Origin: Amoeboradix gromovi X-113
Taxonomy: Eukaryota > Fungi > Sanchytriomycota
Reading direction: 5' to 3'
Assembly (NCBI GenBank): GCA_018985225.1
Contig: JADGIF010000218.1
Location: forward strand, 1 to 13,988
DNA: 13,988 nucleotides
Below the pieces are notes generated by a model. The model saw only the letters and a list, made by a program, of their open reading frames with translations. It was not told where the DNA came from and searched no databases. The position numbers were made by a program, and so were the translations under genes. Shown piece by piece: positions 1 to 13,988 of this stretch (the first letter of the stretch is position 1; each line of letters opens with the position of its first letter).

Positions 1-244
1 TAGTATAACATTACAAAATGGCTCTAGAAAAGAGTACCGTCTAAGAAAATGCACCTTTTGCTTAAATGCTCAAAGACCGTAATTGAAAGAGATGCAGGGT
101 CTTCTAGTTTTATTTGAAGAGGGGAATACAATCAATGAAAGAAAATTGGTATAATAGAAGATCTTTTATTAATGATAGCATTTCCTCAATATGGTGCACC
201 TCCTTTAAAAACGAGTTAGTCTAGTTTTTATATTTGGTGTCCCA
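1..244 (+). mobile_element. Right end of a TIR element (copy 1) carrying the 3' end of a TnpB/Fanzor-like gene; truncated by the window start
   Basis: 50..243 aligns with 6719..6916. The 30-bp TIR at 214..243 has reverse complement GGGACACCAAATATAAAAACTAGACTAACT, 29/30 identical to the left end at 13829..13858. Confidence 0.85.
2..224 (+). pseudogene. Frameshifted C-terminal fragment of a putative Fanzor/TnpB-like RuvC nuclease
   Basis: Manual translation: SITLQNGSRKEYRLRKCTFCLNAQRP (2..79), then a 4-nt deletion vs copy 2, ERDAGSSSFI (85..114), then a 1-nt deletion, RGIQSMKENWYNRRSFINDSISSIWCTSFKNELV* (TAG 222..224). CxxC followed by RD resembles the TnpB/Fanzor Zn-finger plus RuvC-III end (consensus CxxC...RDxNAAxNI). 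Confidence 0.6.
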
Positions 245-352: not shown

Positions 353-3300
353 ATGCGAAACATCATGAGTGATTTGTTAATTTTGCATCATTTACAGGTA
401 CTTCAGTCAGAACTGAGAAAAGTAGACAAGTCTATAATTTATCATCCTGTAAAGCAGAATGAATTGAATTTTAGCTTCTCAACAATTAAAAAATGGTACC
501 AATCTCAGCATCAATTTTCAGATCCTTTTTGTCTTGATCAACTTAATTCTACCTTTGACATACATCAAAAACAAAAGAAAAACTTGACTTTGCTAGCTAT
601 GACTCACCCAAGGTCTTTTCACGTATATACCGTTAGTAATGTAAATGAAATTCCTCAAGTTGAACCATTGGATACATGTATTGGAATGCTTAGGTACTTG
701 CAATACGAAAGGCACACTACACTCAGTGCTCATCATGTTTTAATGCCTTTTTTCCAATCTCTAAACAGTAGCTCCAAAATATCTCTTGTTGCTCTGTCAG
801 CAATTTTGGAGATATTGCCTACGCTTCAGGAATTCAACGATTTTCAATTTTGTGTTAAAATTACTTCATATTACCTTACAAAGTTAGTGCCGAAAGGCAA
901 TGAAGATGTTTTGGGCATTTTACAATTCTTCTTAGACATCTTCAATTTGCTTTTAAATTACAAGATGGATTCGGAGCAATATACTTGGTGGATTTCCACT
1001 TTATTAGGGTACATCGTTGGTAAATTGCCCGATGGATTGAAAATGCAAGCGGAACACTCAATTTTCCAGTTGATCCTCAAGCAATGGGACAACCCATCTT
1101 CTCTCTCAACCTTGCTGCGGATTTTGCTAAGTCCAATTCTTCCGAAATCTCCCTTCACCGTTTACTTTAATAATCTGAAATTTAAAACTTTGTTTTTTGA
1201 CTTTAATAGTTTCTCTACGAACGGCATTGAAACCACGGAATTAGTCGATATCCAGGTTGACGTTTCGTCTGAGGCATTGCAATTATATACGATGAGGTTG
1301 TTGCAGCGTCTATATTCTCACAATCAATCAATTACTCCTCTAGACAATAATTCCTATATATCGCAATGTATTCGTATTAACGGTATATACTCTTTATTCC
1401 GTATACTGTACAACCCTTCTACAGTGTTTCCTATTCGATTTCAAGCATTCAAATCACTGCAATTTATAGTTTTAGATAATGTCCAACAGTATCAATCAGA
1501 GTGCTATATCTTTGTTAATTTCTTAATTGATGCCATAAATCTGCTAGGCCCTCTACCTAGTACTCTGACACATCCAAGGGTATCTCAGTCAAAGTTTAAG
1601 CCTCGTAACAATCAATATCATCCTAATTCTAGTATGAGTGCTAACAGTTCTCTGTACAGTCCATTTAATCAAATTGATGAACCATTTACTAACAATATGC
1701 CCCGAACTTATCCGCTGTGGGTAGCTATGCAAGCTGTAGAGAGTGGTGACGTTGTTTATAATTGGTCTTATACCAGATTGTTTCTGCATTGGTTTGAGAG
1801 TGTTTGCGATCAACTGAATTTGCACGATTTTGAAAACGCTGATAAAGAGGCTAATGGTCAATGTCAGACTACTCTTAATATCACAAAACCTAATGAAATA
1901 CCTGACATTCTCTTTAAACGAATGTGGCACAGTCATGGGCTACTACATTACTATTTTAAGAACTACAGTGGTCCATTTACATATATAGGACATGGTGTAG
2001 TGTACAAACAGGCTGACAAACTACACTACTTTGAACAGCTAGGACAATATCCACCAGCTAGCTTTCTCAAATCATTTCAGGTTAGCCAACAAGCTCAGCA
2101 AACTATAAACTCGCCGTCTGATAACAAGCGTTCTAGCATTGATTCTAGTAAGCATACATCAGGCAAGCATGTTTACTGCCGAGACCCCGATACACCGAAA
2201 CATCAAGAGAGTAGGATAGCTGTAAGTAATGAAGTAGTAGAATGGAGGAACGCACTTATGTCATGTATAGAGCAGATATTTGTTGACAATAAGCTTTTGT
2301 TGCACCTAGCTAATAAGTATGACTACAATGATGGAGACGATATATTTCAGCGTCTTATTACCATAGTTCACAAATACTGCATGCCGGACTACGCTAATGT
2401 GTGTAATAGATCTTTCTGCGCAATCAGCTTAAACAGCTTTATCAGAGTCTTGAAGCATTTGACTGATAACCAGTCTAGCTCAATCAGCTATGAAGATACA
2501 TTAATGTTAAGCAATAAACTAAAGCGGCAGCATTTATTGAAGCAATGTTGTAGGATATTCAAAAGGGATCTAAAGTTAGGGCTAAATGAGTTTATTAAAC
2601 ATGGATTCTTACCCGATGATTTGGAACCACAGCAGTTTGCAACGTTCTTAAAGCAGTGTAGATTATTAAACAAGTACAGAATTGGGGAGTTACTCGGCAA
2701 GCCTAGCAACGTTCTAGTCCTTAAACATTTTGTAAGTACGTTCGATTTCCAAAATGATAGGATTGATGAAGCGCTTAGAGATTTCCTGAGTAGTTTTAGA
2801 TTACCTGGTGAGTCTCAGCAGATAGAACGTATTTTAGAGTACTTTAGTGAGCATTATTACAGCTACAAACCACAATACATCAATGATAAGGATGCGGTTC
2901 TTGTGCTGTCATATGCAATTGTTATATTAAACACAGACAGGCATAGTCCACAAATCAAAAATAGGATGACATTGCAACAGTTTCAAAACAATCTGCGAGG
3001 TACCAACGACAAGGAAAATTTTGACGCTGTTTTTCTCACAAGTATTTACAACGGTATAAGTAACAATGAGATAGTGATGCCGGGTGAAAAGGATAATAGT
3101 GAAACCTATTTCCTATTCTGGGACGAGGTATGTAAGAAGCACATAAACAATAATACTAGAGCGACAAGTAACTCACAAATATTAGAAAAATGTTTGTTTA
3201 TGGACAATTGGGGACTATTTTTAACAACCTTAATAAACTGTAATTACCACTAACATAGGTTGGGATTTCTGCGATGACGAGTACACGCTACAGTTAATAG

Positions 3301-4895
3301 TTCAAGGATTCCATCATTATGCGCAATTGAGTGATGGTGATTCAATAGACGCAATGATCATGGCATTATGTTGTATGAGTGGAATATACCCAGGGTATTC
3401 ATATGCAATGGACAACACTACGATTACAAACGAATTGGGGGGATACTTTAAAGGACAGCTCGCATTGTACATGTTGAGCATATTTATTAGCAAGTACCAT
3501 AGCAAGATCAAGGCATGGGACCATGTAATATGTTTAATAAAAAGATTATATCTGGGTGGATTGCTAAATTCATCTTTGGCAGCAACTGATTTTTTCCCTA
3601 GCAACGAAGAATCAATGAGCAATACCACCTCACTATTTTCAACATTTACTAGTTATTTTAATATAAACACATCACCAAACACCAGTCCATCACAAGAAGA
3701 TAACAAAAATGTCGGCAGATTTGCTGTGAAATGTTTATTAGAATGCAACTTTAATGATTTGTTAATGAAATGTAATATTAACGACTTGCTAGAACATTAT
3801 TTAAGACACTCCGTAGAGACAATAGATAAAAAAAGCACGCTATCACCTTTTAGCTTATATGCTGTATCGATGATAATAAGCCAATTTCTGGAAATAAATG
3901 AGTTTGCAACGATTAAACCATTCATTGAATACATGATGAAAGCGAATCCACTACTAGCATTTCATGTGTCAAGCAGTTTTCTAGAATTGTACACTAATGG
4001 TTACGACCATGAAAAGGATATAAATAGAGAATTTGAAGATTTTAACATGAATTGTATAAATACCTTATTGGAAACTGACCTGCCGATTATAAATGTAATA
4101 GGCTATGTTAAGCCTATATTGAGTAGATTCTACAACAGCCAGTCATTCATTCAATGGTTTAACGATCTGTCTAGTCATATAACATTTGATACGGTGCTAC
4201 TTTCTTCTGTTCAAGAATTCTTATTCAAATTAGGTAAAAATGGACAGGACTTAAAAGTAGTTGAATTAATTACACACATTCTTGCTATATTGATCAGCAA
4301 TGCAGGTGATACAAAGAGCAAATTACATGGACAGTACTTGGACTTGTTGTATCATGCAGTTGATACAGAAAACAGCAGTGAAATAGTAGAGTCTTTGCTG
4401 ACTCATGTGTACTGTCAGGACTCTGATGTTAGGCAAAAAGCGTGGTTTTATTTGCAGCGAATTGTGCAAAACCCAGAGGATTCATTATTTGAAACGCTCT
4501 TCACTAGATTTGATTTTAAAAAAGTAGACAACGAGGAATTGATGGATGAGTTAAGAATGAGAGCAACTGCCATAGTCTGTAAGACATACTTGATAGGAAA
4601 CGACTATAATGTAGACGTGTTAATAAAGATTATAAGATTGTTAAAGGGGTACTATACTGGAGTTATAATGATGGAGATAATACCAGAGGCTATAAAAAAC
4701 ATCTTACTAATAATGATGGATATAGGTGACATAGATGAAGAAGTATGGGAGGAGTTGGAGTTTATACCAAATTTGAAATCTGATTTATTAAAGCAGGAAC
4801 TGCCCAAAACAGTAAACAATACAGATCGAGCAGAAAATGAGAATAGGGAACTAGAGGAAGCAAAAATGGATCCATCAAAGCCAATATACATTTAG
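353..4895 (+). CDS. GBF1: Large Sec7-domain ARF guanine-nucleotide exchange factor, GBF1/Gea family; join(353..3239,3259..4895), about 1507 aa
   Basis: Sec7 catalytic motif FRLPGESQQIERILEYF (Glu finger codon 2810..2812) and LSYAIVILNTDRHSPQIKNRMT. The N-terminus is DCB-like (LQSELRK; LMPFF...VALSAILEIL). Removing 3240..3258 fuses the two track ORFs in frame and gives LFMDNWGLFLTTLINCWDFCDDEYTLQLIVQGF, which resembles the post-Sec7 HDS1 segment. The start could instead be the ATG at 365. Confidence 0.88.
3240..3258 (+). other. Predicted 19-nt spliceosomal intron (GTAATTACCACTAACATAG)
   Basis: GTAA donor, CTAAC branch-point motif and TAG acceptor. It contains the in-frame TAA (3251..3253) that ends the first ORF, and its removal restores the frame into ORF 3327..4895. 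Confidence 0.8.
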
Positions 4896-4905
4896 TGCAG
4901 TAAAT

Positions 4906-5898
4906 TTATTGATACAATTTAATTAAATCTTGCAAATGCTCAATGTTCTGCAAATGGAATACTATACGCTGCTTGCCATTGTTAGGCGGTAGCAGTGATA
5001 CGTTTGAGCTGTTTCTCATCACTGAGTCCGGTACATTCTTTAGAAACACAATGTTTGTATCCGGTGCATACGAACGATATCTAGGATTAATACTATTAAA
5101 GAAAAGGAGAGCTGCGTCGTGAGTTTTTGAGAGTTGTTTGTAGTTAGAATCGAAAGCATACTTACATTGCTCAGTTAACACACTGGCCTGTCTTAAACCA
5201 CCGCCAAGCATTTTACGGTAATATTTGGCGGAATCAACAAAGAATTTACTACCCAACAACATTGCGCCAATTGGGGCACCAATAGCTTTGGAAAAGCACA
5301 AAGAAATCGAGTCGCATACATCCCCGTATTCGTGTAATCCTCGATTCTCTTTGATTGCTGCGTGCCAAATTCTGCACCCATCTAGATGCACATGGATATC
5401 GTTATCGCTTGAAAATTTGTAAATAGATTTTAGGTCAGTGTAGTTGACTACGTGGCCATCCAGTGTGTTTTCCAGCAGGGCTATTTTGGTTTGCGCAACG
5501 TGAACATCCTGCCTGATATTGGAGTGATTAATAAATGAGCTTAAATGATAGTCTGGGACCATTATTGGAAGAGCGCGACTAGTGAAGCTAATACCTGCAC
5601 TTTCCCACCGCATTAAGTGGCAATTGCGGTGACCAATTACGCTTAGGGGCTTCGAACATCTGGAAGATGCAGTGAGGATGCTAATTTGATTAGCCATTGT
5701 TCCTGTAAGCATAAATAACCCTTTCTCTTTATTAAACTTTTTAGCCATAGTCTGTTCAAATTCCTCCACATTCGGGTCTGTCCCAAGCACGCAATCATTG
5801 AATTTTTTGATATTTAAAACTGATTTAAGCATATTTTGAGTGGGTTCCGTAACTGTATCACTACGAAAATCAGCAATGAACCGACGACTTTTTAGCAT
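4906..5898 (-). CDS. GLY1: Low-specificity L-threonine aldolase (PLP-dependent, GLY1/LtaA family)
   Basis: Family motifs DFRSDTVTEPT, TGTMANQI, LLENT, HLDGCR (usually HLDGAR), the PLP-lysine motif SLCFSKAIGAPIG and RKMLGGGLRQ; 330 aa, uninterrupted. Confidence 0.93.
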   Translation of the reverse strand: MLKSRRFIADFRSDTVTEPTQNMLKSVLNIKKFNDCVLGTDPNVEEFEQTMAKKFNKEKGLFMLTGTMANQISILTASSRCSKPLSVIGHRNCHLMRWESAGISFTSRALPIMVPDYHLSSFINHSNIRQDVHVAQTKIALLENTLDGHVVNYTDLKSIYKFSSDNDIHVHLDGCRIWHAAIKENRGLHEYGDVCDSISLCFSKAIGAPIGAMLLGSKFFVDSAKYYRKMLGGGLRQASVLTEQCKYAFDSNYKQLSKTHDAALLFFNSINPRYRSYAPDTNIVFLKNVPDSVMRNSSNVSLLPPNNGKQRIVFHLQNIEHLQDLIKLYQ

Positions 5899-6614
5899 TG
5901 AGTGTATTAAAAAAAATTAAAATTTTGAACTATTGTAATGAAATTTCACATTCTGAAGAAATCGCTAACCTATCTCCATTTTGCATTGCATTCAAATAGT
6001 TGGGAGTTGCAAATGTAGACCTCCCTATTAGCCCCTTACTTGTCTTGCACACTAGAATGAAATAGCGTGGATCACATTCTTTCGCTACTTAAAATTAATA
6101 ATTCTTGAACGCAATTTTAGGATTCTGCAGCGATGTTATTTTGTGATACTCACTTGAATTAAGGTTTCAAGGTTCTGAAATATTACAGAGTAAACATAAA
6201 AATAGTCCAATAGGCGCAGTGTAGTTAATAGACAAAATAATTTTTATAATAGTACGGTATATTTTAGCGCCTAGAGATTAGCGAAGTAGTACTTCTGCTA
6301 TTTCTTCTATGCCAACTTTGTCTTTCGCCATTTTTAGTAGATTTCCAATGACTGGATGACTGATGCTTTCTTTATAACCTTATAGAATTGGGCAGGCATA
6401 GTGACCGTGAATGCATCATAGAAAGAGTTTGGTGAGATATGCACAAGACCGCCTTTGGTCTTTTTTTCTTTGTGTAGTGCAGTAGACAGATGAAATCAAA
6501 TAACCCAGTAGCATTCTACTTGGGTGTTAAATAGTATTCAAGTATACACTTTGTCTTGATCTTAACTGATCGCATGATTCCTATCATATTTTAGTGGTAA
6601 GTAACTTAAACATA

Positions 6615-6917
6615 TGGGACATCAAATATAAAGACTAGACTAACTTTCTGAGACAGTTGGAATCAGTATTTCAAGTGTGTTAACCAGTAGTAAATTAAAT
6701 TAAATTAATCTTGTTGGTTGCACCTTTTGCTTAGACACTCAAAGACCTCGTATATTTGAAAGAGATAGTGGGTCATCTTGTCTTATTTTAAAGAGGGGAA
6801 TTACATTAATGAAAGAAAATTGGTTTGAAAGAAGAACTTTTATTAATAATGGTATTTCCTCCTTATGGAGCACCTATTTTAAAAACGACTTGGTCTAGTC
6901 TTATGTTTGGTGTCCCA
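6615..6917 (+). mobile_element. Complete ~300-bp non-autonomous TIR element (copy 2); putative Fanzor 'ghost' locus
   Basis: Left TIR 6616..6645 GGGACATCAAATATAAAGACTAGACTAACT; right TIR 6888..6916, reverse complement GGGACACCAAACATAAGACTAGACCAAGT. Flanks read CA-TA|TGGG...CCCA|TA, i.e. a TA duplication (alternatively ATAT if the ends are GGG/CCC). The left 58 bp match 13829..13886 and the right 198 bp match 50..243. Confidence 0.9.
6704..6898 (+). pseudogene. Start-less C-terminal remnant of a putative Fanzor/TnpB-like nuclease
   Basis: 64 open codons: INLVGCTFCLDTQRPRIFERDSGSSCLILKRGITLMKENWFERRTFINNGISSLWSTYFKNDLV*, with the TAG (6896..6898) inside the right TIR; homologous to the copy 1 peptide. 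Confidence 0.6.
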
Positions 6918-6935
6918 TATACCGTCCTATTGTTC
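6864..6935 (+). ncRNA. Candidate 3' part of an omegaRNA-like scaffold plus flank-derived guide (5' boundary unknown)
   Basis: TATGGAGCACC (6864..6874) can pair 10/11, including one G-U, with GGTGTCCCATA (6909..6919). An equivalent stem is possible in copy 1. Transcription cannot be shown from sequence. Confidence 0.35.
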
Positions 6936-7481: not shown

Positions 7482-7781
7482 CTAAACAAAACAGGACTTA
7501 GATACCAACTCTCCTTCGAATAAGACACCCTCTTCGATAAGTATTTTCTTTTTAGCGTTCAATGCATTGTTATCAGTTTTTTTGTAATACCCCTTTAACT
7601 TCCTGTTCACTCCAACAACGCGATGACAAGGAACTGCTCGAAAAGTATTGCAAGATAAGGCATTGGCTACCGCCCTAGGTGATGATTGCAATGTTAAGGC
7701 GATACTCTTATAAGTAGTAACCTTTCCAATGGGTATTAATTTGGCCTGATTGTAGACTTTATTTTGGAAATCTGTAGTCAT
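7482..7781 (-). CDS. MGMT: O6-methylguanine-DNA methyltransferase (MGMT/Ogt), C-terminal domain only
   Basis: Active-site VPCHRVV, IPIGKVTTY, Arg-finger SPRAVANAL and C-terminal KKKILIEEG; 99 aa. Confidence 0.9.
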   Translation of the reverse strand: MTTDFQNKVYNQAKLIPIGKVTTYKSIALTLQSSPRAVANALSCNTFRAVPCHRVVGVNRKLKGYYKKTDNNALNAKKKILIEEGVLFEGELVSKSCFV

Positions 7782-8260: not shown

Positions 8261-11200
8261 ATGCCCAAGATGTCTGAAATCAGTTTTAAACAAAATTTCG
8301 ATAATTCGTCTGAAACATATCTTTTAATGGCCAGAACTAAGAAAAAAATGACCTCTTTGACAGAGATATTTAAGAAATATGGAACAACCAAAGAGAAGGT
8401 GATGATGGTAATTGGGTTAATCGCAGCTATTGGATTAGGTGCTGCTTTACCGTTGCAGTCTATCTTTATGGGAAATAGTATTACCGCATTTGTAGAGTAT
8501 GGCTTTGTAACAACTCACAAGGACTTGCCCTTTAAACCAAATTATGATACTGTCAGACAACAAAAGGAGGACAACTTACATGCTCAAATAAATATAGTTG
8601 TTATTGGGCTCTGCATAGTTGGAAGCTCAGTCCTTTTGTTTGCATACCTACAAGAAGCATTTTGGATGTTCACTGGTGAGGAACAAACTCGCAGATTGAG
8701 ATTAATTTACTTGAAAAGTTTACTGTCTCAACCAATAAGTTTTCATGATACTCGAAAACCTGGCGAGCTAATAACTCATCTTATTAGTTCTATCAGTTTG
8801 ATTCAAGAGGGTGTATCTGAAAGATACCCTGTGCCTTTGCAATCTGTTGCGACGTTTGTTGCTGGCTTTGTCATTGGATTTGTTCATAGTTGGACAATGA
8901 CACTGGTCATGTTAAGTACTACTCCATTGCTAGCACTGAGTATGGCAATGTATGGTAAAATTATGAGTCAGGGTGCTGCTAAATCGCAATTGCGCTATGC
9001 TGATGCTGGGGGATTAGCTCAGAATGTCCTTGAAAACATGCGCATCGTCACTGCATACAACTCCCAAAGCTACTTTTTTTCAAAGTTTATGGATCAGATA
9101 AATACAGCATATAAACTAGGTTTTACTAAATCATTTCTAACAGCAACAATTATTGGTGCACTGATGTTTATTTTGTTTGGGACTTATGCCTTGGGTTTTT
9201 GGTTTGGAAGTACTCAAGTTGCTGATGGAAAAATGGCTGCTGGTGATGTTTTAACCACTTTTTTTGCTGTTTTAATCGGCGCTTTTAGCATCGGTCAGAT
9301 AGGTCCTGCTAAAGGCGATATTGATACAGGTGCCGGTGCTTGGGATAATATCAGAGATATCGTGAATAATGTACAGCCAGTTAAGCAAGGCATCATAATT
9401 CCAGTTGAGAAGTTCAAAGGTGAAATTATATTTGATAACGTGTGTTTTACCTATCCATCTCGACCAGATACTCAAGTACTAAAAGGTTTTACCCTTTCTA
9501 TAAGACAGGGCCAGAAGGTAGCATTAGTAGGAAGCAGCGGTAGTGGAAAATCTACGATTGTGTCACTACTATTAAAGTTCTACTACCCTGACAGTGGTAC
9601 GATTACTGTTGACGGTATCAATCTCACAGACATAGATACCAAATGGTGGAGAACTCAAATAGGGCTTGTAAGTCAGGAACCTGTATTGTTTGACACTACA
9701 ATTAACGAAAATGTTTTATTGGGAGCTGTTCACTTTGATTTTGCAAAGCGAATGGAGTTAGTTGAGAGCAATAAGGATAAAATACGGTCCTGCTGTACGC
9801 AATCACTGGCTCATGACTTCATTATGCAATTTCCATTAAAATATGAGACTCTAGTCGGTGAGAAGGGTAGCTTAATGAGTGGGGGCCAAAGACAACGCAT
9901 TGCAATAGCTAGAGCATTAATGAAAGATCCTATGATTATGCTATTAGATGAGGCTACTAGCGCATTGGATTCTACGAGCGAGAGAGTGGTGCAGCAAGCA
10001 CTAGATGAAGTAAGCAAGAATAGGACAACATTCATAATTGCTCATCGTCTAAGTACCATTAAAGATAGCAACGTCATAGTAGTGATGAATAAGGGGTTTA
10101 TCAGTGAGATTGGTGACTATAATGATTTAATTCAAAAAAAAGGTGATTTCTTTGCTCTAGTTCAAGCGCAGGGTTTAAGATTAGCCACAAACGAGAAGAA
10201 AGAAGTCAAGGAGCCCAAAGTCAATGTTGAGGTTGCAGGTGAAGTGGTGACTACACCTTTAGAGACTGACGCATTAATTCCCAAAGTATCCGTCCGTAAA
10301 TGGCCAATACTAAGATTGTTGAGAATGCAGTCAAACGATTTTGTGCTTATGATAGTTGGTTTAATAGCAGCAGTTGTCAATGGTGCCATATTCCCGGTAT
10401 ATACTATAATATTGAGTAGTATGCTCACAGTATTCGCAGGTACTCCGGATGAAATCAGATCTCAGAGTATATTTTGGGTACTGATGTTTATAGTACTAGC
10501 TGTGGTAGCATTCATTTCTATGTTTGGGCAAGTAGCTTGTTTTAGTGTAGCAGGAGAAAGGTTAACAGTACAGATCAGAAGTAGGTTGTTTAGATCATTG
10601 CTAGACAAAGAAATAGCATACTTTGATGTGCAAGAGCATAGTAGTGGTATTCTTAGTAGCAGACTAAGCGAAGATGCCGATAAGATCAAAGCATTAACTG
10701 GTCAGTTGTTAGGTGTACTAGTTCAGTCCACAAGTACCATAGCAACAGGATTAGCTATTGGGTTTTACCACAGCCCAGAGTTAGCAGCTCTGATATCCAT
10801 TGCAGTTCCATTAGTCATATTCATGGGTATAATGAGAAAAAAGATCATGGAAGGAGTGACAAAGAAATTAAGGGATGAATATGTTAAAGCAAGTAGCATA
10901 GCAAGTGACGCTATCATGAATGTACGAATTGTGCAATCATTGAACAGGGAAGATTCATTTCTTGAATATTATAGAGACAGAACCAACATCCCACATCAAC
11001 AAGCTCTAAAGGCTACAATGACCAGCAGTATATATTTTGCTGTGAGTCAAGGGGCGATGTTTTTCGTGCTTGCATATGCATTCTGGTTAGCGAGCGTATA
11101 TATAATTGAAGAGAAGATCAAGTTTGAAGACGTTTTTGGTGTAATATTCCCCATTTTGTTCAGCATGACAGGTGTGGGACAGGCCTTGGCGCAACTGGGA

Positions 11201-12037
11201 GTCATGAGCAAAGCTGCTGTTGCTGCTAATAGCTATTTCGAGACTATTGATCATTTGCAAAATATTGATACAAATAATCACACAGGTCAGGAATTAGTTA
11301 ACGTGCAGGGAAGCGCATTGCTCAAGAACATTGAGTTCAGCTATCCAACGAGACCTGATGTAATGGTGTTAAAGAACATTTTGGTTAACATCGAGGTGGG
11401 TAAGACTACAGCACTGGTAGGTAGCAGTGGAAGCGGTAAATCTACGATTATTCAGCTGCTAGAGCGCTTCTATGATCCTAACAGTGGATTGGTAGAATGC
11501 GAGGGATTAGACGTGAAGAAGTGGCATTTGACTTATCTTAGAGATCAGATGGCATTGGTCAGCCAGGACCCTGTTTTGTTCAGAGGTACCATCTATGAAA
11601 ATATTGCGTTTGGTGCAATGCGCGTGGACAAGCAGAAAGCGGAAGAATGTGCTAAAATGGCTAACATCGACAAGTTTATTCAAGGACTTCCAGATAAATA
11701 CGATACCCTAGTGAACAACACGACGGCTAGCGGTGGACAGAAGCAAAGAATTGTTATTGCTAGAGCGTTATACAAGAACCCCAAGTTTCTTTTGTTAGAC
11801 GAGGCAACCAGTGCATTAGACACAGAGAGCGAAAAGATTGTGCAGGAAGCATTAGTCGGAGCTAGTCAGAACAGAACCACAGTTGTAATAGCACACAGGT
11901 TAAGCACGATTCAAGATGCGGATAAGATTATTGTGATGCAGTTAGGTAAGATTATCGAAATGGGAACCCACGACGAATTGTATCGTCAGCAAGGAATATA
12001 CACAGGATTGGTGGATCAGCAGAAACTTACCAGTTAA
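8261..12037 (+). CDS. Full-length ABCB (MDR/P-glycoprotein-like) ABC transporter, TMD-NBD-TMD-NBD
   Basis: Two Walker A motifs GSSGSGKST, Q-loops VSQEP/VSQDP, signatures MSGGQ and ASGGQ, two Walker B LLDEATSALD and two H-loops IAHRLSTI, with two hydrophobic TM blocks. The true start may be the ATG at 8327 (MARTKKK). Confidence 0.95.
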   Translation: MPKMSEISFKQNFDNSSETYLLMARTKKKMTSLTEIFKKYGTTKEKVMMVIGLIAAIGLGAALPLQSIFMGNSITAFVEYGFVTTHKDLPFKPNYDTVRQQKEDNLHAQINIVVIGLCIVGSSVLLFAYLQEAFWMFTGEEQTRRLRLIYLKSLLSQPISFHDTRKPGELITHLISSISLIQEGVSERYPVPLQSVATFVAGFVIGFVHSWTMTLVMLSTTPLLALSMAMYGKIMSQGAAKSQLRYADAGGLAQNVLENMRIVTAYNSQSYFFSKFMDQINTAYKLGFTKSFLTATIIGALMFILFGTYALGFWFGSTQVADGKMAAGDVLTTFFAVLIGAFSIGQIGPAKGDIDTGAGAWDNIRDIVNNVQPVKQGIIIPVEKFKGEIIFDNVCFTYPSRPDTQVLKGFTLSIRQGQKVALVGSSGSGKSTIVSLLLKFYYPDSGTITVDGINLTDIDTKWWRTQIGLVSQEPVLFDTTINENVLLGAVHFDFAKRMELVESNKDKIRSCCTQSLAHDFIMQFPLKYETLVGEKGSLMSGGQRQRIAIARALMKDPMIMLLDEATSALDSTSERVVQQALDEVSKNRTTFIIAHRLSTIKDSNVIVVMNKGFISEIGDYNDLIQKKGDFFALVQAQGLRLATNEKKEVKEPKVNVEVAGEVVTTPLETDALIPKVSVRKWPILRLLRMQSNDFVLMIVGLIAAVVNGAIFPVYTIILSSMLTVFAGTPDEIRSQSIFWVLMFIVLAVVAFISMFGQVACFSVAGERLTVQIRSRLFRSLLDKEIAYFDVQEHSSGILSSRLSEDADKIKALTGQLLGVLVQSTSTIATGLAIGFYHSPELAALISIAVPLVIFMGIMRKKIMEGVTKKLRDEYVKASSIASDAIMNVRIVQSLNREDSFLEYYRDRTNIPHQQALKATMTSSIYFAVSQGAMFFVLAYAFWLASVYIIEEKIKFEDVFGVIFPILFSMTGVGQALAQLGVMSKAAVAANSYFETIDHLQNIDTNNHTGQELVNVQGSALLKNIEFSYPTRPDVMVLKNILVNIEVGKTTALVGSSGSGKSTIIQLLERFYDPNSGLVECEGLDVKKWHLTYLRDQMALVSQDPVLFRGTIYENIAFGAMRVDKQKAEECAKMANIDKFIQGLPDKYDTLVNNTTASGGQKQRIVIARALYKNPKFLLLDEATSALDTESEKIVQEALVGASQNRTTVVIAHRLSTIQDADKIIVMQLGKIIEMGTHDELYRQQGIYTGLVDQQKLTS

Positions 12038-12383: not shown

Positions 12384-12540
12384 ATGATAAATGGAATCAA
12401 TGGATGTCATCCTGAACAACTCAAATCTAAAGAAATAACTAGCAGGTACAGCATACATTTATCAACGTTGAGAAACTGGTCCAAAAATTGAGCAATTTGA
12501 TGTGTTTCAACCCGTCCTCAAAAGAGAGCAACAATAAATA
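12384..12540 (+). pseudogene. Decayed helix-turn-helix fragment resembling the N-terminal DNA-binding domain of pogo/CENP-B-like transposases
   Basis: Manual translation ...LKSKEITSRYSIHLSTLRNWSKN*AI*CVSTRPQKRAT, matching the pattern 'eia.kygi..STl.nW.k...kR' with two in-frame TGA stops. Assigned by motif recall only. Confidence 0.35.
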
Positions 12541-13442
12541 AACCTGTAAACCATTTACTTGACAATTTGTATGCTGTTGGTCTTACCACTCGTCCAACAA
12601 TAGAGATCATATGGCAGTTAAGAACATATACATCAAGTATATACATCATTATTTAATCCCGCCCCGGGTAGTGAAAGCGTGAGCAATCACTGTAACAGAT
12701 TTACTAGCATTGCTAGTTTCTCGGAAATTAAGACTTTTAACGAGGAGAATACTGGACTCTTAAAATTTGCATAGATTGACGGAAAAACGTCTAAATTCAT
12801 TTTTAAAATATTACGGAAGTGTGGAAAACTTGCGCAGAAAGTGTCTTGGCGTATTTTTTCCTTAAGTATATAAAACGCAGTTCCGACTGTTAACTGAATA
12901 AACCATTTATCGTCTGCATGAGACGCATTGCTCCAATTTACTTCTTTCTATACTTCTGCTACCACTACATTCAGAAACTATTTTGGAAATGAAGTGTAAG
13001 TACAATAAGAGGAAAGACATTGACACAATGCTATGAAATGCTTACTAATTGACACTTACAACGTTTTGCACTATATAGAGAAGCAATCTTGAGAAATTAA
13101 GCTATAAACTGTTAAATCAGATAGAGAACTTAAGGCAATAAGGAACATAAAAGTATATGCGTCCTTGTTCAATCCCGTGTCAAGGTAATGGAAGTGTGGG
13201 CAATTACTGTAACAGAGCGACTGGTTTTATCAGTTTTTTCGCAAAAATTCATACTTTCTCGTAAATCAGGACTTTTAACCAAGAGGCGCTACAATATAAA
13301 GAAATATTTTGAAATATTTAGATGCGGTAAATTTAGCTGCGCAATGTGCTGCAATTGGGTACCGTATTTGTTAGGCACTGCTGTGTACTTGTGTAGTCCA
13401 CTGTCTTGTTTTAAATTATTGAAGTTTCCGAGGTATGAAACG

Positions 13443-13637: not shown

Positions 13638-13827
13638 GCGGATGCTATAATAAATCATTCTGCTTTTACAAAATTTGGTTTTTGAAGAAAATATCGGGAT
13701 GATGAAACCGTGAAGTCGAAGTCTATTCTTAAAGAGAAGCGAAATGTTGCGGCTCACACGATAGACTTGCGTCGCCTATAGCAGCAGAAAAACTGTACTC
13801 CATATTGAAATCGTCTTCGAATACATA

Positions 13828-13988
13828 AGGGACATCAAATATAAAAACTAGACTAACTTTCTGTAACAACTTGGAACATTATTTCAGCTTTATTACTTTA
13901 TGGATTTAAGAGATGAGTGGACATTCAGCTAGTTGCGGAGTTGACGAGTATGAAAGGAGAATAAATAACTTTTATAAATAACTTTTTG
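13828..13988 (+). mobile_element. Left end of a third copy of the TIR element; truncated by the window end
   Basis: TIR 13829..13858 GGGACATCAAATATAAAAACTAGACTAACT (29/30 to the copy 2 left TIR). Subterminal similarity to 6646..6673 continues to about 13886. Preceded by CATA (13824..13827). Confidence 0.85.

Follow-up and report, generated by a model that had tools for sequence, protein, structure and literature searches.

A miniature element in Amoeboradix gromovi, very probably derived from a transposon with a divergent Fanzor1-like nuclease gene

The window, that is, the whole 13,988-nt stretch of DNA analysed here, corresponds to an entire contig (C458) of the 10.5-Mb, 1,319-contig assembly of Amoeboradix gromovi. 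Its host genes, each a long uninterrupted frame, are a Sec7/GBF1-like ArfGEF gene (353-4895), a beta-eliminating lyase gene (4906-5898, reverse strand), an O6-methylguanine-DNA methyltransferase gene (7482-7781, reverse strand) and a gene for a full-size P-glycoprotein-type ABC transporter (8261-12037). Between the lyase and methyltransferase genes lies a 301-bp element (6616-6916) that runs from GGGAC at 6616 to GTCCC at 6916, starting with GGGACATCAAATAT and finishing with ATGTTTGGTGTCCC. In an inverted-repeat search, its left terminal inverted repeat (TIR), GGGACATCAAATATAAAGACTAGACTAACT (6616-6645), which has the same terminus in all family copies, paired with the right TIR (6888-6916) over 29-30 nt with four mismatches, and the right TIR lacks one nucleotide of the family consensus. 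This pairing is far above chance. A first-pass annotation, made from the sequence alone, had described a ~300-bp element with ~30-bp TIRs that retains ~58 bp of a left end and ~200 bp of a right end, and the measured values agree closely: 301 bp, TIRs of 29-30 nt, and, by alignment, 59 nt and 198 nt of the two ends.

All parts of the element are given on the forward strand. The left arm (6616-6674, 59 nt) consists of the TIR and a subterminal leader kept from the parent element, and it is 81% identical to the left end of another family copy at 13829-13887. It is followed by AT-rich filler (6675-6718) at the internal deletion junction, which is found in copies of the window element's own subfamily and is absent from the other subfamily and from long copies. 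The right arm (6719-6916, 198 nt) would comprise the 3′ end of the parental nuclease gene together with the right TIR, and is the candidate region for an omegaRNA scaffold. Translation, and alignment with longer family members, place here an open remnant of a putative Fanzor C-terminus, 64 codons and a stop (6704-6898), which reads ...GCTFCLDTQRPRIFERDSGSSCLILKRG...KNDLV. The peptide containing CTFC that had been reported for the right end is matched exactly by the translation of 6710-6898, LVGCTFCLDTQRPRIFERDSGSSCLILKRGITLMKENWFERRTFINNGISSLWSTYFKNDLV followed by the stop. Its recognisable features are CTFC (6719-6730), the second CxxC of a zinc ribbon; ERD (6758-6766), assigned to RuvC-III, where the family has GSSxF in place of the canonical NAAxN that follows; and a TAG stop (6896-6898) inside the right TIR. 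The arrangement CTFC(x10)ERD (6719-6766), with the RuvC-III Asp after the second CxxC, is conserved in the family. The window copy retains of the nuclease only this second CxxC, the ERD motif and the C-terminal tail.

The element is one of a large family. A DNA search of its own genome returned 1131 first-look candidates, and all 40 of the matches scored were near full length at 84-91% identity; the family is put at about 1,000 copies in 10.5 Mb. Two subfamilies are distinguished. In subfamily A, to which the window copy belongs, 22 aligned copies lie ~9% from their consensus, and in subfamily B the copies are 97-99% identical genome-wide; by this divergence A is old and B young. In the loci retrieved, complete A copies are 288-307 bp long and complete B copies 396-726 bp, and the deletion series as a whole spans 288-1,660 bp. 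The copies are MITEs in being short, TIR-bounded and numerous, in having no complete gene and in having a longer coding relative. Further family pieces had been noted at both window edges, and these proved to be B-type copies cut by the contig ends. The piece at 1-243 (forward strand) is a right end truncated at the contig start; it belongs to a younger B-type copy and holds the same ORF remnant with a frame break. The piece at 13829-13988 (forward strand) is the left end of another such copy, cut by the contig end and preceded by the flank ACATAA (13823-13828). The latter piece returned 541 first-look candidates at 94-100% identity in the DNA search of the genome. Breaks inside B-type copies are common among the contigs of this assembly; the repeat limits contiguity and may cause chimeric joins across copies. 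Longer B copies contain a ~130-aa frame starting MAKRKQKLSYTSKSKKKK. Because the N-termini of full-length relatives from metagenomes align with the start of this frame, B copies fuse the true N-terminus of the protein to its C-terminus. No ORF longer than ~165 aa was found among 150 scored copies.

The coding relatives of the MITEs were found through the peptide of the right end. A profile of 14 MITE peptides, searched against 1.84 billion representatives, retrieved eight proteins. Two of these, P0006 and P0001, contain ...VDEYHTSKMCSVCE...RKCTFC...ERD; they read ...VELVDEYHTSKMCSVCENEIDKS...EYRLRKCTFCLDAQRP..FERD, with PF07282 scores of 24.6 and 26.1 bits. P0006 is encoded by a 1.66-kb copy in contig C33 (L092:3231-4890) in which both family ends are present. 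In a further contig, C1157 (L093:3-1310), the sequence opens within a frame of 436 codons that continues without interruption to its end in the same right TIR and carries GIDPGV, FWGDG, NESYTSKHCSVCE and RKCTFC..FERD. Its segments are FIGIDPGVKIP (RuvC-I), LIFWGDGQF, INESYTSKHCSVCE and YRLRKCTFCLDTQRPSLFERDVGSSSFILKRG; the Glu of NESYTSK lies downstream of FWGDG and is accompanied by CxxC...CxxC and the ERD of RuvC-III. A long relative of A type is the degenerate copy in C415, of which L096:3247-3444 is collinear with the window right arm (6719-6916) at 88% nucleotide identity. Directly upstream of the matched stretch the Fanzor frame of C415 goes on (...LVDEHHTSKHCCIC...EYRLRKCIFCLDTQRP), which puts the right-hand border of the window copy's deletion immediately ahead of the second CxxC. 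The window right arm is likewise homologous to the right ends of B copies, of the copies in C33 and C1157 and of one metagenome copy. Full-length relatives of the parent nuclease, of 616 and 585 aa, occur in metagenomes (L099:5001-6851; L102). The contig of the 616-aa homologue is gene-dense and apparently intron-less, with AAA_25, dCMP deaminase and U-box genes beside it, and looks like that of a giant virus. In another metagenome contig (L103:1-250) a fragment of a bacterial-type ABC ATPase runs straight into the GIDPGV region of a family copy, a junction that is probably an assembly chimera. From A. gromovi itself a complete intact gene of the family was not recovered: C1157 is cut by the contig end, copies with the N-terminal half (in C767, C488 and C826) appear to carry stops, and the assembly yielded no intact nuclease gene of A type.

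This chain of copies bears on one alternative, that the element is an ordinary MITE unrelated to Fanzor, in which CxxC...ERD is a chance frame in AT-rich DNA. Several properties of the short copies would be expected under such a reading. The window and B peptides alone have no Pfam match, and for the window peptide this holds even at an E-value of 10; the majority A consensus has a 1-nt frameshift between CTFC and ERD; and comparison of the A consensus with the B consensus gives a dN/dS of 0.37, which is modestly below 1 and comes from 56 codons and 25 differences, too few to be firm. The last value is weak evidence that the frame was under selection in master copies. Against a chance frame stand the collinearity of the right arm with long copies, in which the frame extends further upstream to take in the first CxxC, the alternative Glu, WGDG and GIDPGV, and the retrieval of those long proteins by the peptide profile. 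An origin unrelated to Fanzor is consequently very improbable.

The assignment of the parent gene is based on motif order and on domain similarity. A RuvC-I motif of the form xGxDPGx is present as GIDPGV in the copies of C1157 and C33 (L093, L092) and as GCDPGV in P0011 and P0013. At the canonical RuvC-II position the family has FWG(D/N)G, and, as judged from the alignment, an invariant Glu follows in (N/D)ExxTSK ~35 aa downstream, beside the zinc ribbon. Fanzors have been described with a rearranged RuvC-II in which Gly or Pro occupies the canonical Glu site and a conserved Glu lies ~45 aa downstream (Jiang et al., PMC10530073), and the Gly of the present family together with its displaced Glu matches this rearranged site. 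The long copies in C1157 and C33 hold both the RuvC-I and RuvC-II motifs, whose lack in full-length copies would, by the first-pass annotation, have counted against a Fanzor. PF07282, the TNB domain of TnpB and Cas12f, is the best or second-best Pfam match in all eight members tested. The scores, 13.6-26.1 bits, are all below the 26.3-bit cut-off, with E-values down to 1e-5. Additional support comes from a 693-aa protein of the same genome (L098:1463-3541), which the C1157 protein matches by BLASTP (E 7e-9, 27% identity over 209 aa). This protein scores 33.2 bits on PF07282, above the cut-off, has matches to ISDra2 TnpB (PDB, E 0.004) and to IS200_TnpB (NCBIfam, E 1e-4), and contains the motifs CIDPGIK, IYWGDGSY, PEFKTSKLCCDC and EDRDVNS. 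The language-model neighbours of the C1157 protein were all TNB/DUF8286 clusters, mostly from Nucleocytoviricota, at a similarity of 0.97. Other searches with the family itself were negative: PDB sequence and profile searches gave no matches, NCBIfam gave no match, and hhalign against the intact 671-aa Fanzor of contig C542 matched the RuvC-I motif alone. Two AlphaFold2 models, with mean pLDDT of 39.2 and 41.5, were too low in confidence for use. The proposal of a divergent Fanzor origin is supported for the family as a whole, since its long copies hold RuvC-I, the rearranged RuvC-II and the first CxxC, and their 3′ end is collinear with the MITE right arm. At the level of sequence comparison, these observations support descent of the family from a divergent Fanzor/TnpB-like gene.

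The target-site duplication is best read as the 4-bp ATAT (6612-6615 and 6917-6920, forward strand), with a family pattern of AWWT, rather than as the TA duplication that had been suggested, which would imply an element of Tc1/mariner type. Counted over 42 complete copies set in one orientation, the pattern is A(33) C(40) A(41) W W T(29) on the left and A(40) W W T(31) G(18) T(16) on the right, so that the positions adjacent to the termini are a mixture of A and T and not a fixed TA. In three copies with non-consensus duplications (AATC, ACTA and ATTG) the whole four-base unit is repeated, and a related element of 4.57 kb, in C542, unambiguously duplicated ATTT on entering the right TIR of a B copy. 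A 4-bp AWWT duplication is favoured by these four-base repeats, by the nested ATTT and by the ATAT on both sides of the window copy, and the TA duplication is rejected. Exact 4-bp repeats are found in 8 of the 42 complete copies, against 2.6 in shuffles; the shortfall of identical flanks could be due to mutation or to contigs mis-joined across near-identical repeats. Sola2-type elements that carry Fanzor1 in dictyostelids also have a 4-bp AWWT duplication (Bao and Jurka, 2013; PMC3627910). This similarity could be taken to mean that the ORF remnant is the C-terminus of the element's own transposase, for example a Sola2 DDE enzyme, to which the AWWT duplication would fit (PMC3627910), and a stop codon inside the TIR is known from some transposase genes. 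The long copies, however, have a TnpB-type order of motifs and a consistent TNB signal, they are homologous to a Fanzor that passes the Pfam threshold, their language-model neighbours are all TNB proteins, and no DDE family was detected. A transposase remnant is very improbable.

The left flank of the window copy, ACATAT (6610-6615, forward strand), contains a CA at -5/-4 that is near-invariant in the family: C at -5 occurs in 40 of 42 oriented complete copies, compared with a mirrored G at +5 in 18 of 42 (Fisher p 1.8e-7). A is present at -4 in 41 of 42 copies and at +1 in 40 of 42, and T at +4 in 31 of 42. Such asymmetry is not expected from a symmetric transposase target and is the pattern expected of a left-side TAM, and the near-invariant CA may be the TAM of the nuclease. 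The same kind of left flank, ACAATT, is seen beside a related element whose left end lies in a foreign Logan contig. A third TIR family, ending ...CCCTAGTCTAGTTTTTACAGAGCATGTCCC, was observed in the left flanks of L013, L017 and L019 and at L091:4306-4340 and L084:1865-1890. Three A-type MITEs lie 3-4 nt from its terminus, which suggests that they inserted into the AWWT duplication of an earlier element.

Taken together, the evidence makes it very probable that the element at 6616-6916 is a 'ghost' or MITE, a miniature that cannot move by itself and derives from a TIR transposon whose sole recognisable gene is a very divergent Fanzor1-like nuclease. An internal deletion removed nearly the whole gene; 59 nt survive at the left and 198 nt at the right, and the right part still reads as the last 60 codons of the nuclease with the second CxxC, the RuvC-III Asp, the tail and a stop in the right TIR. 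Copies would have been moved in trans by a Sola2-type cut-and-paste transposase that makes 4-bp AWWT duplications at AC|AWWT|GT sites. If SpuFz1 is a guide, an omegaRNA may be transcribed from the right end of the parental element, with the adjoining flank as its guide segment. The window copy itself is most likely an inert relic in neutral decay.

A more active role for such copies was also considered. The window copy and the ~1,000 like it might be transcribed across the right TIR into the flank and supply guides for a family nuclease made elsewhere, so that the MITEs form a large omegaRNA and guide library that protects or spreads copies. In this case any guide segment would begin at the right copy of the duplication (6917-6920). 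The right ~200 nt are kept in every one of the 42 complete copies, whose left ends are reduced to 59-140 nt, and RNAalifold on ten right ends from five lineages predicts a consensus hairpin at the terminus, formed by the right TIR and the preceding ~22 nt (6865-6916 in the window, forward strand), with one compensatory change, from C-G to U-A, in the C1157 lineage. The 146-nt right end of a B copy (L065) is better folded than shuffles (z -3.6), and the hairpin itself has z of -3.2 to -3.4 in B and metagenome copies. The asymmetric, TAM-like CA and the long open frame kept in C1157 would fit as well, and a precedent exists in the ghost loci of Spu-1, for which a guide repertoire has been proposed (PMC10432273). 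Other results are less favourable. Across 22 A copies, alignment columns are conserved to a similar degree throughout (0.83-0.97) and the right arm does not stand out, which fits neutral decay after insertion. The window copy has the 1-nt deletion in its TIR and a weak fold, with z of -1.8 for the hairpin and -1.3 for the right end, which is no better folded than shuffles. No intact A-type nuclease came to light in the assembly, and the right arm may have been kept simply because it holds binding sites for the transposase. Rfam gave no match for the right end, and the locus was found in one sequencing run, which is of DNA. On balance, a supply of guides by the window copy and its kind is unlikely, and a role as a guide-RNA gene looks unlikely for a copy as decayed as that in the window. 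In its most developed form the proposal is that the ~1,000 MITEs are live omegaRNA genes, with the scaffold in former coding sequence plus TIR and their own flank as guide, used in trans by a few divergent Fanzors whose ORF ends in the TIR. We regard this version as similarly doubtful. Were it true, the asymmetry of the left-flank motif would be accounted for by a retention of copies at CA-type TAM sites that depends on the nuclease. The preferred reading of the window copy is still that of a decaying miniature element.

In bacterial IS200/IS605 elements, the guide-RNA scaffold at the right end overlaps the 3′ end of the nuclease gene, and a motif in the left flank serves as the TAM; these elements have neither TIRs nor a duplication and are moved by a Y1 (HUH) transposase. 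Compared with TnpB-omegaRNA miniatures of this kind, the A. gromovi family is alike in the candidate scaffold region that overlaps the 3′ end of the gene and in the candidate TAM of the left flank, and differs in having TIRs and what is best read as a 4-bp duplication. The Spu-1 elements of Spizellomyces punctatus, which carry SpuFz1, have 30-nt inverted repeats, a conserved CA, a CATA TAM and 134 ghost loci (Saito et al., 2023; PMC10432273), and the same paper bears out the earlier description of ~30-nt TIRs, an upstream CATA and many ghosts in that system. The likeness to Spu-1 includes TIRs of ~30 nt, a conserved CA directly before the left end, a host among the zoosporic, chytrid-like fungi, an element of ~2 kb with Fanzor1 as the single gene, and many ORF-less copies that keep the right-end region, which encodes the omegaRNA in Spu-1. 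Unlike Spu-1, the present family has a duplication best read as 4-bp AWWT, its ghosts number ~1,000 or more in 10.5 Mb against the 134 of S. punctatus, a difference of about tenfold, and its protein, known here from sequence alone, is too divergent for the Pfam threshold or for sequence matches in the PDB. The dictyostelid Sola2-type Fanzor1 elements (DFa-1/2/3 and PPa-1/4/5; PMC3627910) have AWWT duplications (ATAT, AAAT and ATTT), the pattern favoured here too, and share TIRs, Fanzor1 as a passenger and derivatives with internal deletions. Those elements have short TIRs, whereas the TIRs of the A. gromovi family are longer (~30 nt) and amplification has reached the scale of MITEs. No transposase, of Sola2 or other type, was identified for the A. 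gromovi family.

These comparisons extend ghost Fanzor elements, described from one chytrid, to a sanchytrid, and our literature search found no paper that pairs 'Amoeboradix' with 'Fanzor'. To our knowledge, Fanzors are the only RNA-guided DNA nucleases known in eukaryotes. The A. gromovi family offers a natural deletion series that delimits the right end required in cis, a candidate TAM (CA, 3 nt from the terminus) and a compact nuclease lineage, invisible to Pfam, that is open to biochemistry. It also illustrates that nuclease-derived elements can hide under an annotation as MITEs.

The genome contains other Fanzors in abundance. PF07282 has at least 560 candidates, and all 150 of those scored were above the cut-off. 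The related element in C542 (L091:92-4657, 4.57 kb) lies in the right TIR of a B-type MITE and has perfect 33-bp TIRs (GGGACCTGATCTGACAAAATGTCCC..., also beginning GGGAC) and the duplication ATTT; it encodes the intact 671-aa Fanzor (PF07282 at 67 bits, with HTH_OrfB_IS605) and a second ORF of 303 aa, for which neither Pfam nor the Atlas gave a lead. Hundreds of short tails correspond to only the last ~110 residues of another, canonical Fanzor family. Two degenerate tails of this kind lie in the window itself, at 12388-12457 plus 12600-12747 and at 12992-13286; each has a RuvC-III remnant (RDHMAVKNIYIKY) and then a conserved block of ~100 nt ending CTTTTAACGAGGAG. The tail of this canonical family is present in many loci, often as an open frame of 144-145 aa, and may represent a second ghost family that keeps its omegaRNA region.
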